Shown here in pieces: positions 22,804 through 62,457 of a stretch of 64,000 bases of DNA (position 1 is its first letter; each line of letters opens with the position of its first letter). The notes beneath the pieces are model-generated. The model did no database searches and was not told where the DNA came from. It saw only the letters and a list, made by a program, of their open reading frames with translations. The position numbers and the translations under genes were made by a program. The stretch covers positions 1 through 64,000 of the forward strand of contig JBBPEB010000033.1 in assembly GCA_039096225.1 (NCBI GenBank). Reading direction: 5' to 3'. This stretch comes from Blastocystis sp. Blastoise (Eukaryota > Protista > Bigyra: Opalinata).

Positions 22804-25800
22804 ATGGTGTATGTTATTAAGAATCTATTTTAGTTTAATATTTTTTATAAAGTAACACTATAACACTGAGTAAGGCAGAAATACAAAAAGTTAGGAAGTT
22901 TAAAATGATGATTATGCATGCCGTGAAAGAATTTTACTATTCTATCAGATTTCCAGGCATAAAAGAGTCGTTTAATAAAAGTTATTTAACAAATGATTTA
23001 GAGGTTGTCCTAAGAAGACTAGCACTAAAAGAAGGAATTAATATCAGTTCTATAAAAATAACATCAAAGAAAATTAAAGTATATTTATTAATATTTAATT
23101 GTCAATATATTATAGAAATTATTGTTATATATTCCGTATATACTTGATGAAAAAATACGTTTACAAGCAGGATACATGTTTAAACACTTTCCTGACTCAA
23201 ATAGACTGGATGTTGACAATTGGTTATATATTTTAATAATAAATATAATAAAGAAATATTTTATTTTATTCTATTCTACAGAAAAAGTTGATGATTATCT
23301 AATAATAAAAGAAGTAAGATCAGCATTTGCTGATAAAGTCAATAAATGTATGTTTAATTCATTCTTTGGATTTGAATTAAAGAATGGAGAAGAAATAATA
23401 TCAAAAGAAAAACAGAAAAAAAACGATATTTTTGTATATATATATGTTTATATGTATTTGTCAATATTAATTAGATGGAAAAATGTTAGAAATACCCAGA
23501 TTTCCCTATTGATTTGTATACATACCCAATTTTTTGTATGATTTGGTAGAAATACCCAAAAGTATCTGTTAACATTTTGATTTCATTGTCCAATCGTATT
23601 AATTTATATAATAACCGTGTTTATTAGATGTATTTCTAGAATTTAAATTAACAAAAAAATAAAAGAATAATTCATATTATGACGTTACGATTTGACTATT
23701 TGATCCAATCAATCGATTTTTAAGTTTCTATTAGAAATTCATTTGTTGTACTATATTATTCCTTGAATTTGCTTATTGGCAATTTTATCTATTTTTCTTT
23801 ATTTATATTTATGTCTTATTTTAACTAATATACACATTTGTTTTGTTATATACCCTGTATTTATACTATTAATTCAATAAAATAACTTAATAGACAAGGA
23901 ACATAACATAATTGTCTGTAATTGTTTTAAAAAATAAGATTAGCAGACGTATAAGCGATGAACAACTATAAGATAAACCTGATTAAAAAAGATAACATAG
24001 AATTACCTTATATAACATACTTTTAATTTACTGACAAATTAGTTAATTCAATGAATACTTTATATAAGATCTATATATTTATATTATATGAGTTTATAAA
24101 TCTTATAAAGATGTTTTAAGAAAATAGAACTTATTTTTTGATAATTAACAGATTTCTTGATTCTTTGTATTTTCATATATACTATTACAGTGTCATGAAA
24201 ATATTGTTTAAAGACAAATATATAAATATTAATCTCAAATAACTGTTTTAAGAGTATGAACTGTGAATTGATTAAGAAAAATATTTAATAGATGACGAGA
24301 TTCATGTTAACAAGTTTTGTTTGGTATATGGTATTAGTTTCTCTATACTATATCAAAAGGAAAGATAGTTTTATTCTGGATCAAGTAAATGTCGAAATGG
24401 AAAATGTTGTTTAAAAATCATGAATGCGTATGTATTGTGTTTGGTTGCTTATGTTGAGCATACTGACCAGAATTCAGTTTAAAATAATAAACTACAGTTG
24501 TTAAAGTATTAATGATTGCTAAATAAACTCTGTATTTGAGTATATTTTGAAAATAAAAAATGAATCTAAGTTTTAAAACTGCATTTAACTCAATTCTAAC
24601 ATATTTCGAATAAGCTACACTGTTGAGAATAAAACAGATTACAACTCATTTCAGAAACTATGAAGTTTTGAAGGATGAAGAGCTATAAATAATTTAATAA
24701 ATGCATTCATAAGTGTAAAAAGAACATATAATTAAAATGTTTATTAAATAAAATATCAATATATATATATATAAGGAATGACTTATGTCAGGAGTTGAAC
24801 CTGATTGCTATCTAATTATGATAGCCTCTCACCTTATAGAGCATAAGAGTAATAATAATAATGATAATAATATTAAAATACATAATATCCAATATATATA
24901 TATATTAATATATATATATATATATATAAATTAATGAAATAAGAAATATAAATAAGAAATAAAAATGGGAAAATCTTTTTATTAATAAAAATAAATATTA
25001 TATTAATAAGTATAACAGATAGAAATAATTAAAATATGAAGAGAAGTATGTATATATATATATATATATATAGATATAAAAGATAATGAAAAATAAGAAT
25101 TGAATATAGAAAAAAATTGAAGACAAGAATAAGGAGAATAAGGGAAAATAAATTAAGAAGAAGAATAATATTAATTAAATGAGAATAAGGAATTGATTAG
25201 AAGGATAAAGAGCGAAAAGAATTTATATGTATAAAGAAGAATTAGGGGAAGAGGAAGCACATATAGATAATAAGATAAGAAGATAAAAAAGAAAAAAGAA
25301 AGATGAAGAATAGAAAATCATGTAGAAGAGAAAAAGAAGAAAGAAGGTAGAGAAGAGTTAGAAGAACTATAAAGGAAAATCTATTAGAAAAGAAATAAAA
25401 ATATGAGGAGAATACACATAAGAAGAACAAGTGAAGATGTAGGAGAATGATAAAATATAATATTAGAAAAAGAGTATGAAAGTGAAAAACATTAAATATA
25501 AATAATATTCTGTATAATAAATATTGAAAATAATGAGATATAGAAAAATAGATGAAATGGAATAAAATGAGAAAAACAGAAAAGAGAAAATAATTATAAG
25601 ATTTAAAAAGAAGATGCTGAAGAAGAAGGAGAGGAATGATATAGAGAAGATATAGAAAGATAAGAAGCAAAAGATATAGAAAAAGTGGAAAAAGGATAAA
25701 TAGAAGAAAAAGAAAGAGATATAGAGAAGGAGATTGAGAAGGAAAAACAGGAGATAAAGGATATATAGGAGAATAGAAAGAGAAGAAGGATAAATAGAAG

Positions 25801-28800
25801 AAGAAGACAGAGGAGGAGAAGAATGATTAAATGAAGAAGAAGAAGGATTAAATGAAGAAGAAGAAGAAAGATGAATAGAAGAAGAAGAAGATGATGATGA
25901 ATAGAAGAAGAAGGAGAAGAAGAAGGAGAAGGAGAAGTAGAAGAAGGAGAAGGAGAAGGAGAAGGAGAAGGAGAAGAAGGAGAAGAAGAAGAAGAAGAAG
26001 AAGAAGAAGAAGAAGAAGAAGAAGAAGAAGAAGGAGAAAAAGATGAATAGAAGAAGAAGAAGGATATCAATGAAGAGAAGGAGATTGAGAAGGAGAACAA
26101 GGAAAAGAACGAAAAAAAAAAAAAGAATATATCGAAAAAGAAGAATATATATATAAAGAAGAAGAATAAAGAGAATAATTATATATAGACGAAGAATAAG
26201 ATAAACAGAAGATATAGAAAAGAAGGAGAAGGAAGAGAAAAGAAGAAGTACAATAGAAAAATATGTTGGAAAATAATGATAAATAGAAGATATAGAAGAA
26301 GAAGTAGATGCAGAAAATATAGAAGAAAGATATATAGACAAGGATAGAGAAGAATAAGTAGAATATATATATAGAAGAAGAAAAAAGATGAAGAAGAATA
26401 GAAGACATAGACGAAGAATAAGGAGATAAAGGAGGTATAGAAGATATAGGAGGAGAATGATATGGAGAAAATGTAGAATAAGAATAAGGATACATAAAAG
26501 AGAAAATACAGATGAAGAAGATAGAAGATAAAGAATATATAGAAGAAGGATATACAGAAAGAGAAGGAGAAGAAAAAGAAGACAAGAAGGACCAGAAGAA
26601 AAATAAGATTAAATAAAAGAAGAAGAAACAGAAAGAGATAGAGAGAAGGTGATTCAGAATTAAAATAAATAGAAGAAGGATAAATAGATGAAAAAGAACG
26701 AGAAAGGAATGAACAAGGAGACAAAAAATAAGGATATATAGAAGAAGAAGGAAAATAGAAACAATGTGTAGATGAGAATTAAAAGGAATAAAGAATAAGG
26801 AAAGTATAATTGGAAGAAGATGAGAAAAAGAAGTAATAATATAGAAGGAAATAAAGAAGAAGAGTAGGAAAAGGAAGAGTTGAAGGAAATGAAAAAGAAG
26901 ACAATCATGATAAAGAGATTGAAATGAAGAGAGTAGGTAATGATAGGAGAAGAAGAACCAGTAATAATTAATGGAGGAAAGAAGAAAGTGAAGGAAAAAC
27001 TAGAATATAGAATAGAAGAACATGAAATAAAACATACTATAAAGTAATATTAAGAAAAACAATAACTGTTTTATGTAACATAAGAGTATAAGAATAAAAA
27101 TGAGTAAAAACTAGAGAGTAGATGAATGGAAGAGAGAAGAGGAGAACAAGGCCAATTAAGGACAAGAGGAGAAAATAAGAATGAATAAAAACAAATATAT
27201 AAAAGTTTTGCCTATATATATATATATATATATATATATATATATATATATATATATATATATATATATATATATATATATATATATATAAGAATAAAAA
27301 AGAGAAAAATAAAAAGAAAATGAAATAATTTAAACTATAAGTCAATAAATATATAGAAGAAAGTAAATAATAATTATATATAAAAATAATATTCAATAAT
27401 TAAGAAATTTATATAATATAACCAAAATATAAGAAGTTAATAATATATATATACTATACAAAAAAGAAACCAAGCAGTTATTGACCAGAAAAGCAAGAAC
27501 TATATTTAAAAACATTATAATAATAGATATGAACGTATATATAATAATATAATTATAATTATAAAGAAAATAAATAGAGAAAATATATACATCTACAATC
27601 TGAGTATTAATACAAGCAAATCTATAACAACGATGACATTTGAGTTATGAAAGTTGTTTATTAAGCCTAGATATTTGTGCTACTTTGTGACTTAAGACCA
27701 ATTTGTTGAGACAATTACCAACTTTATTTTCTGGAAGCTTTAAAACCGATACAATAAACACAATCAATCCATTGTGACTCACTGAGAAAGCCTAAAGAAA
27801 CAGTTTTATATGGTGACGTCACATCATCCCATTTATAACCATAAGACAATAGCTGATCATCTAACTTAACCATTTTACATCACCTATATAAGCTTATAAT
27901 AGAGAAAGAGAACATACCACCTTAGATCAATCTGCCAATGGAGACCGCAAGGTACTCTACTATACTCCTAGGTCCTATATATAGATAAATATATACTTAA
28001 AACATACAAAAACGAAATTAATCATATTTTTTATATGATTATTGAAACTTCACTATAAATTAACTTATTAAATTTTATTGAAATCTTAATATTTCTGCTT
28101 TTTATTATTTATTATTTTATTTAAATACTTTAAACTGTTATTCTTACTCCTGATGTCTCGTCGTTGTTGATGAAGTATGTATTTATGTAAATAAAAATAG
28201 TTAATTGATTAATTATTTATAGAGTGTTACATAAAACAAAATTGATGATTCAAGTCATGAGAAAATCACTTGACTTGATGAAGGCAAGAAGAATTAGTCG
28301 ATTATATGATAGTCACTAGATTGCCTAAATGTGTAGAACTGTCAGAAAAGGTGAGTTTGTGTGTGTTTGAATTTGAATTCAACATATATTTAAATACATA
28401 TTTCACTAATTAATTCAATTTTAGAGAAGTTACAAACACAATTGATTTTTCTTGGTGATATGTTGAGTTAGAATGTCGTTATTTTAATTTTCTATTAGTA
28501 ATTTGAATTTAATTATGACCTATATAAACTAAAGTTAATTATAATAGTTTTCTAGGTAATGTAGATTTGTCAAGGTTCTTTAAAAGTTTTGAAAGTAGTT
28601 TATAAATGTTACAAATGATCATTAGTGTCAATTATATTAATATAAACAGTTGAAATGATTTTTAAGAATATAAGCACACTATGGACATTTTTTCAGGTTT
28701 CTGTCAAAAGGTCCAACGACTTTTTTGTTTTGGTTTCCCCAGTGGTGAGCAGTGAAAATTTTTAAATATGTAGCTGACAAAAGGTTATTTGATTTTTCTG

Positions 28801-61812: not shown

Positions 61813-62391
61813 AAGAGATTCAAGAAGTTGACTTTCATTTTATACATAATATGTGTATATAAACACTTTACTAAAAGAACTTTGGAAAATATTGTGGATG
61901 AGTGTTTTGTCAAATGGTAAAGTTGTGTCAAGAGTTAATTATTTTAATTCATTTTTGTTTAAATCAATGTTTTATGTCCACTCTATAAAAACTATCTTTT
62001 AATACTGAGTTTAACGTTTTAAAGTCGACATGTGTGTTTGGTTTGTTTACTTTTAATTATTAAAATTGAGTTTAAATTGATAAATTATGTCAGACACGTC
62101 TATATTGATTGATTCAAACAGTTTAGAGATAATTTATTTGTTTGAGTATAAATAGATTTGTTCTCATTGTGACTGTTGTTGAGAAGAGGAAGTCTAAAAA
62201 AACTATAAAAAGTTAGATATATATATATAAGGTCAAAATTGAAAAGTATAAATTAAACTGGATTAAAATAAATTAAAAAAAGAATATATATATATATATA
62301 TATATATATATATATATATATATATATATATATATATATATATATATATATATAATATGTGAATAAAATATTAAAAAATAAAAAAATAACA

Positions 62392-62457
62392 CTTTATGTC
62401 AGGAATTGAACCTGAAAACAATCTATATGATTGTTTCTCTCCTTCTAGAGCATAAAA
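62392..62457 (-). ncRNA. tRNA-like cloverleaf, copy C
   Basis: Minus strand: TTTTATG CTCT-AGAAGG-AGAG AAACAATC-ATATA-GATTGTTT TCAGG-TTCAATT-CCTGA CATAAAG, followed by T-runs. Confidence 0.78.

Follow-up and report, generated by a model that had tools for sequence, protein, structure and literature searches.

The first 64,000 nucleotides of contig JBBPEB010000033.1 of Blastocystis sp. 'Blastoise' (assembly GCA_039096225.1; this whole stretch is called the window below) carry three short sequences on the minus strand, here W1, W2 and W3, which fold like tRNAs and raise the question of what a tRNA-shaped module is doing in repeated DNA. The reading that we favour, at a little below an even chance, is that the module is a tRNA-derived, non-decoding RNA carried by DNA transposons and repeated cassettes, transcribed as a small RNA polymerase III (Pol III) gene of its own and trimmed by RNase P and RNase Z. 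A covariance model made from 15 family members was run over the window and over the genome of this tortoise-gut isolate (33.3 Mb, G+C content of about 21%). In the window it recovers the three copies (Table 1), of 67-69 nucleotides (nt), and gives no other score above 27 bits, the next best being the antisense strands of the same three copies. Its bounds agree within 1-2 nt, and on the same strand, with the sites proposed in a first-pass annotation of this DNA, and the stems quoted there, the D-loop GG, the invariant T arm and the third loops ATAATTA, ATTAATA and ATATA were all confirmed on reading. The copies have in common the D-loop GG and the T arm TCAGG-TTCAAYT-CCTGA, a 17-nt sequence that occurs three times in the window against 0.03 expected. 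The minimum-energy fold of each copy is a cloverleaf of -17.6 to -19.7 kcal/mol, with fold-energy z-scores of -2.58 (W1), -2.92 (W2) and -3.03 (W3). Since the antisense strands fold just as well, the strand cannot be chosen on energy alone.

The evidence that the fold itself is maintained comes from an alignment of 14 distinct family sequences. With the classical four stems, 97% of the cells are paired and 10 of the 21 pairs have changed on both sides. RNAalifold lengthens the third stem to 8 base pairs (bp), the apparent linker at position 26 being paired with the variable region, and double changes are then found in 13 of 24 pairs, with 95.8% of the cells paired. Controls with slid partners were 38-44% paired, and none of 500 shuffles reached any of these measures. 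Pairs 6-63 and 7-62 covary (seven AU, seven GC), which places the 7-bp acceptor stem directly against the D stem; the result is a four-way junction of 7+4+8+5 bp without any unpaired nucleotide between its stems. The connectors had earlier been described as essentially absent, and the very short junction stands, with the correction that the third stem is mostly 8 bp long and leaves no unpaired linker at all. Variation is spread very unevenly over the structure: all seven columns of the third loop vary, as do 12 of the 16 columns of the third stem and 10 of the 14 of the acceptor stem, against one of seven in the T loop and none of ten in the T stem. The acceptor stem is the most strongly covarying helix. 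The T arm, which contains the core GGTTCAAYTCC, is fixed while all other stems vary, and its only covariation is a change of the outermost pair from T-A to A-T in a third subfamily. The elbow, formed by the T loop TTCRANY and the D-loop GG, is invariant across all aligned members. On the tRNA-sense strand G-U pairs outnumber A-C pairs by 8 to 1 (the cells are not independent), an excess that favours this strand and RNA. The proposal of the first-pass annotation that selection maintains tRNA shape and not decoding is supported by these comparisons: the stems covary, also among the further copies collected here, and the third loop changes in length and sequence even among near-identical subfamilies. 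That the D stem and the third stem are under selection as well suggests that the small RNA itself, or the full L-shape, matters, and not a mere cleavage site.

The three copies belong to a large family. The exact 17-nt T arm occurs 239 times in the genome and its reversed control not once, the core GGTTCAAYTCC has 323 sites against three for its control, the covariance model finds at least 150 places at 82-95 bits, and 241 places fit a pattern with no constraint on the outer T stem. From these counts we estimate a family of roughly 250-300 members, carried by mobile DNA. Among the 100 places listed of those 241, the three T-stem pairs that the pattern leaves free are kept in 84, and the outermost pair is compensated in the 13 that form the third subfamily (ACAGG...CCTGT); a few copies have mismatches. 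About 45 divergent copies are known from 30-nt pattern matches and not from full sequences, and most copies were gathered by the T arm itself, which makes its invariance partly circular. No member of the family turned up in two scans of metagenomes or in one of prokaryote genomes, none of which covered other Blastocystis genomes. Five hits from these scans were set aside as non-family, three at 29-31 bits and two at 21 and 17.5 bits. The first three are reduced tRNA-like sequences of 62 nt with the same T arm, on metagenome contigs (L093:5471-5522, L096:2495-2556 and L097:13814-13865), one of which is 15.8 kb long and for that reason could be a mitochondrial genome. We found no published description of the family and no paper that ties Blastocystis to tRNA-like elements; the genome paper of the tortoise isolate does not mention tRNA (PMC12129017).

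Neither the decoding tRNAs of the genome nor known RNA families account for these sequences. No window copy matches an Rfam family at gathering thresholds, and the tRNA and mascRNA-menRNA families, both in the library, are not listed for any copy even at E<=10. The first-pass expectation of no canonical hit holds for Rfam, which is empty for all copies at that level, and fails for ARAGORN, which calls W1 alone (24780-24850) a tRNA-Ile(AAT). The real tRNAs of the genome, nuclear and organellar, are canonical and score 60.7-74.8 bits with the Rfam tRNA model (RF00005; gathering threshold 29 bits), whose 63 genome matches include no family member. Conversely, the best real tRNA reaches only 22.5 bits with the family model; it is a tRNA-Glu of the small organelle contigs, and a recent pseudogene of a real tRNA is thereby ruled out. 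These contigs, C9 and C12, are dense in canonical AT-rich tRNA genes (loci L063, L072, L073, L088 and L089) and probably represent the genome of a mitochondrion-related organelle. The canonical layout (2-nt 8-9 connector, 5-bp anticodon stem, 7-nt loop with U33 and a purine at position 37, and variable loop of 4-5 nt) is absent from the family: the third loop has 5, 6 or 7 nt, its centre triplet is TTA, TTG, ATA or TAA among near-identical subtypes, and position 37 is often U. The unsteady loop, the 8-bp third stem and the missing linkers together exclude decoding. The head of a tRNA-derived short interspersed element (SINE) was also ruled out, as the first-pass annotation had anticipated along with the lack of an Rfam family, because homology runs for kilobases on both sides of the module. 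An integration target was rejected too, the flanks on both sides being part of the repeat.

What is kept is what the tRNA machinery reads: RNase P, RNase Z and the CCA-adding enzyme recognise the acceptor/T helix together with the elbow, and TFIIIC recognises the B box. The B box GGTTCAAYTCC (consensus GGTTCRANYCC) is present in every copy collected. Of 20 distinct variants of the look-alike, 14 have a run of at least four T no more than 15 nt from the 3' end, and the A-type copies, to which W3 belongs, have T5-T7 at +4. Genome-wide, 67 of 107 forward-strand copies (about 63%) have a T4 within 12 nt past the discriminator. For comparison, all of the 23 distinct nuclear tRNA genes sampled have such a run within 14 nt of the 3' end, and 16% of random positions do. 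On the reading that we favour, each copy would be a self-contained Pol III mini-gene of type 2, whose internal B box recruits TFIIIC and whose T-run ends transcription, and RNase P and RNase Z would trim the transcript into a tRNA-shaped RNA of about 68 nt. The fold would also cut any longer transcript passing through it, and would then act as a portable transcript stop or boundary near the end of the element. The modules point outward 1.3-2 kb from the element ends and face convergent neighbours, an arrangement which would fit such a role. What the analysis establishes is the covarying fold, how many copies there are, that they sit in mobile DNA, the B box and the enrichment in T-runs; transcription, processing and any gain for the element are inferred.

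Several points weigh against a Pol III gene. The A box is only approximate, GCTCTAnAAGG across the acceptor end and D arm against the consensus TRGCNNAGTGG. The first T4 is distant in some copies, at +65 to +88 in the commonest B subtype, at +26 in W1 and at +143 in one further copy (L013). T-runs are common at a G+C content of 21%, and variants that share flanks are not independent. The invariance of the B box is subject to the same circularity as that of the T arm in which it lies. Moreover, the 3' trailer of MALAT1, which forms pairs with an A-rich tract, is for that reason probably rich in U, and this makes a T-run compatible with RNA polymerase II (Pol II) as well (PMC8457004).

This last point leads to the strongest rival, in line with the processing signal suggested in the first-pass annotation, in which the module is a signal of the mascRNA type within a longer Pol II transcript: RNase P, cutting at its 5' edge, would make the 3' end of the upstream RNA without polyadenylation, and RNase Z would free the small tRNA-like RNA as a by-product. 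We consider it possible, somewhat short of probable. It gains from the fact that acceptor pairing, which RNase P and RNase Z both need, is the most strongly covarying helix, and from the surroundings of the modules, since a long pyrimidine-rich repeat block on their own strand ends 24 nt before W3 and its sisters, a comparable block precedes W1, and direct-orientation pairs of modules about 4.0-4.4 kb apart could punctuate one RNA. It loses on other counts: the upstream sequence, read by eye and without a search for an element for nuclear expression (ENE), has an AT/ATT microsatellite and TATAAAC and no A-rich tract; the mascRNA-menRNA family of Rfam is unmatched; conservation of the D stem and the third stem is unneeded for simple cleavage; the enrichment of T-runs is left unexplained; and the central gene of the W3 cassette is antisense to the modules. 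The Pol III mini-gene with maturation by RNase P and RNase Z is ranked slightly higher on account of the terminator comparison with real tRNA genes, and the two readings are not exclusive.

The invariant B box also allows a reading at the level of DNA only, in which it would be an extra TFIIIC site serving as a chromatin boundary or a Pol II roadblock and the RNA would be irrelevant. The modules do often bracket a cassette of about 4.2 kb and face convergent neighbour genes. Compensatory change has taken place in three stems that lie outside the B box (acceptor, D and third); this and the bias of G-U over A-C indicate that a folded single strand is selected, and we regard the DNA-only explanation as improbable. 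Still less chance is given to the idea that the module works as single-stranded DNA, forming a four-way junction when its carriers transpose or recombine. One could cite for it the lack of unpaired bases, the equally good antisense fold and the nature of the carriers, which are DNA transposons. Only one strand keeps the T loop and the D-loop GG that are specific to tRNA, G-T pairs are biased to that strand, and the modules lie 1.3-2 kb inside the ends of unrelated types of element. Just as unlikely is a neutral relic, that is, a captured tRNA pseudogene passively amplified with its carriers, even though the high copy number does stem from the amplification of few carriers and a few copies have stem mismatches (for instance, the CCTAA variant). 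Against it, the module is about 75-80% identical and remains paired between carriers whose flanks cannot be aligned, 13 pairs have double changes, and in W1-type copies with flanks 90-93% identical a single change was counted in the 90 nt covered by 30-nt stretches. A working decoder such as a UAA suppressor, suggested by the loop ATTTATT of the major B subtypes with its centre triplet UUA, is hardly credible given the TTG, ATA or TAA of sister subtypes, the 5- and 6-nt loops, U at position 37, the 8-bp third stem and the lack of 8-9 and 26 linkers. In the copy of the neighbouring micro-exon gene that was read, moreover, the stops fall in what is probably an exon of the 5' untranslated region, and apart from one frameshifted exon the remaining frame is open.

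Among known systems, the family resembles mascRNA and menRNA of vertebrate MALAT1 and NEAT1 in its non-decoding tRNA-shaped fold, its conserved acceptor/T helix and its unconserved 'anticodon' loop, and RNase P, RNase Z and the CCA-adding enzyme would presumably act on it as they do on those RNAs. It differs in being present in hundreds of copies in protist mobile DNA, whereas MALAT1 and NEAT1 are single host loci for long noncoding RNAs, in having neither an Rfam match nor an A-rich tract visible by eye upstream, and in an invariant B box and T-run that suggest Pol III transcription of its own. Murid gammaherpesvirus 68 is a parasitic element with several Pol III-driven, non-aminoacylated tRNA look-alikes (vtRNAs or TMERs) that are processed by host tRNA enzymes; these are viral and are followed by pre-miRNA hairpins, whereas the carrier here is a DNA transposon and no downstream hairpin was seen. 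To our knowledge, non-decoding tRNA look-alikes used by parasitic elements come mainly from a herpesvirus. With tRNA-derived SINEs the family shares multiple copies, a tRNA origin and the B box, but a SINE is a short retroposon with the tRNA part at its head and with stems that decay, and the module here is internal to repeats of 1.7 to more than 20 kb, with both flanks conserved and covarying stems. Yeast tRNA genes and extra-TFIIIC boundary elements are B-box sites that flank chromatin domains or block Pol II; they need no RNA fold, whereas selection acts on the fold here. In organellar tRNA punctuation and in plant mitochondrial t-elements, tRNA-like folds mark RNase P and RNase Z cuts at the ends of longer RNAs, and in contrast to these the present copies lie on large contigs (hundreds of kb to Mb) and not on the small organelle contigs.

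Hundreds of copies of the family populate the DNA transposons of a gut protist, and their evolution is clearly compensatory. Should they be expressed, this would show that the tRNA fold can be domesticated by mobile DNA as an all-purpose device for transcript ends, boundaries or small RNAs, and the family would offer a natural series of compensatory mutants on the requirements of RNase P, RNase Z and TFIIIC. More speculatively, and with modest confidence, unrelated lineages of DNA transposons in a protist may share a portable tRNA mimic, maintained by selection and built as a perfect four-way junction, that uses RNase P and RNase Z, TFIIIC and Pol III, or both, to end or fence transposon transcripts, for instance so that read-through into the inverted ends does not yield hairpin RNA prone to silencing. 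This would amount to nuclear RNA end formation dependent on the tRNA machinery in a non-vertebrate, invented by mobile DNA. In practical terms it is an unannotated class of repeats, partly miscalled by tRNA finders, as W1 is by ARAGORN.

Table 1. Positions in the window of the three modules, their T-runs and features of the carrier of W1 and W2.
Feature	Position	Strand	Remarks
W1	24780-24848	minus	linker-less tRNA-like cloverleaf, T loop TTCAACT; 79.1 bits (covariance model)
W2	33428-33496	minus	linker-less tRNA-like cloverleaf; 90.3 bits (covariance model)
W3	62391-62457	minus	A type, third stem 8 bp, loop 5 nt; 85.8 bits (covariance model)
First T4 past W1	24750-24753	minus	26 nt downstream, farther than for real tRNA genes
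T8 run	33409-33416	minus	11 nt past W2
T7 run	62380-62386	minus	from 4 nt past the W3 discriminator; Pol III terminator-like
Left inverted end region	23477-23560		array of repeated TAGAAATACCCAA motifs; also the point where at least 17 other genomic copies cease to be homologous
Right inverted end region	46223-46360		same TAGAAATACCCAA array, inverted orientation
Low-complexity block upstream of W1	25242-27400	minus	pyrimidine-rich (CT on the minus strand)
High-copy repeat of 1.9 kb	31207-33114		insertion about 310 nt downstream of W2; 35 or more copies at 95-100% identity

The copies lie within repeated mobile DNA, as the first-pass annotation had supposed in speaking of transposon-derived DNA, and two distinct carriers can be recognized. 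W1 and W2 belong to an element bounded by inverted ends that spans about 22.9 kb. W1 is the 3' member of the pair, about 1.3 kb inside the left end and pointing outward, and W2 is the 5' member. Such pairs recur at five other loci, where both members share a strand and the W2-like copy is 4.03-4.35 kb to the 5' side of the W1-like one; the distance in the window is 8.65 kb because of insertions, including the 1.9-kb repeat. Elsewhere in the genome this repeat lies 3.6-3.9 kb from members of the third subfamily, which the window lacks. A second copy of window positions 21400-36500, at C21:1100350-1111046, is 99-100% identical and misses about 4.4 kb of insertions in the W1-W2 interval, and further copies of the element at 87% identity are found on contigs 8 and 13. 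The placing of W1 and W2 inside a MULE was partly right: they do lie between inverted ends, at about 23.48 and 46.36 kb, and sister copies are near MULE-domain open reading frames (ORFs), about 12 kb from a W2-like copy at two loci (on contigs 8 and 13) and 16-19 kb from a W1-type segment at five more, but no MULE domain was found within the window. The window element looks like a non-autonomous relative of MULEs. A transposase-like ORF with a weak DUF4218 match adjoins it; Pfam yielded nothing informative for nine small and two large ORFs in the neighbourhood of W1 and W2. At positions 38000-44600 and 24000-28000 the two strands differ in purine and pyrimidine content over blocks of kilobases, with GC skew down to -0.77, and these blocks produce long spurious ORFs. 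Two long ORFs elsewhere in the window, at 12985-16731 (+) and 5795-7564 (+) and of 1248 and 589 amino acids, have no Pfam match.

The flanks of W3 are 90-99% identical to a cassette on contig 1 that is distinct from the W1/W2 element and consists of a B-type module, about 4.3 kb of sequence and an A-type module in direct orientation. The B-type partner of W3 lies beyond the window, at C22:66608-66676 on the minus strand. Of the approximately 45 B copies listed, about 21 are followed by an A partner at a distance of 4.07-4.39 kb; others are solo or in B-only or A-only arrays. A pyrimidine-rich repeat block stands just upstream of the A module, by W3 at about 62482-62943, and a hAT transposase ORF is found at 56805-58886. 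The W1/W2 element and the W3 cassette can be aligned only over the module and adjoining AT repeats, at 72-82% across about 68-194 nt, so the module is conserved, or exchanged, independently of its carriers. Downstream of W3, at 61080-61935 (+), there are repeats with a period of about 243 nt and the motifs GAGATTCAA, GTCTTAAA and CAAATGGTAAAGTGTC, a diverged version of which comes after the B module; these could be subterminal repeats that bind a transposase, or Pol III-like units in decay. Between the B and A modules, on the opposite strand, runs a micro-exon gene (window positions 63840-64000 and beyond; L031:2427-3800 (+)) with about 11 exons of 48-73 nt, mostly in phase 1, and introns of the form GTATGT...TATAG, set in repeated modules of about 125-135 nt. 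The L031 copy has stops in its first exons, probably a 5' untranslated region, and one frameshifted exon.

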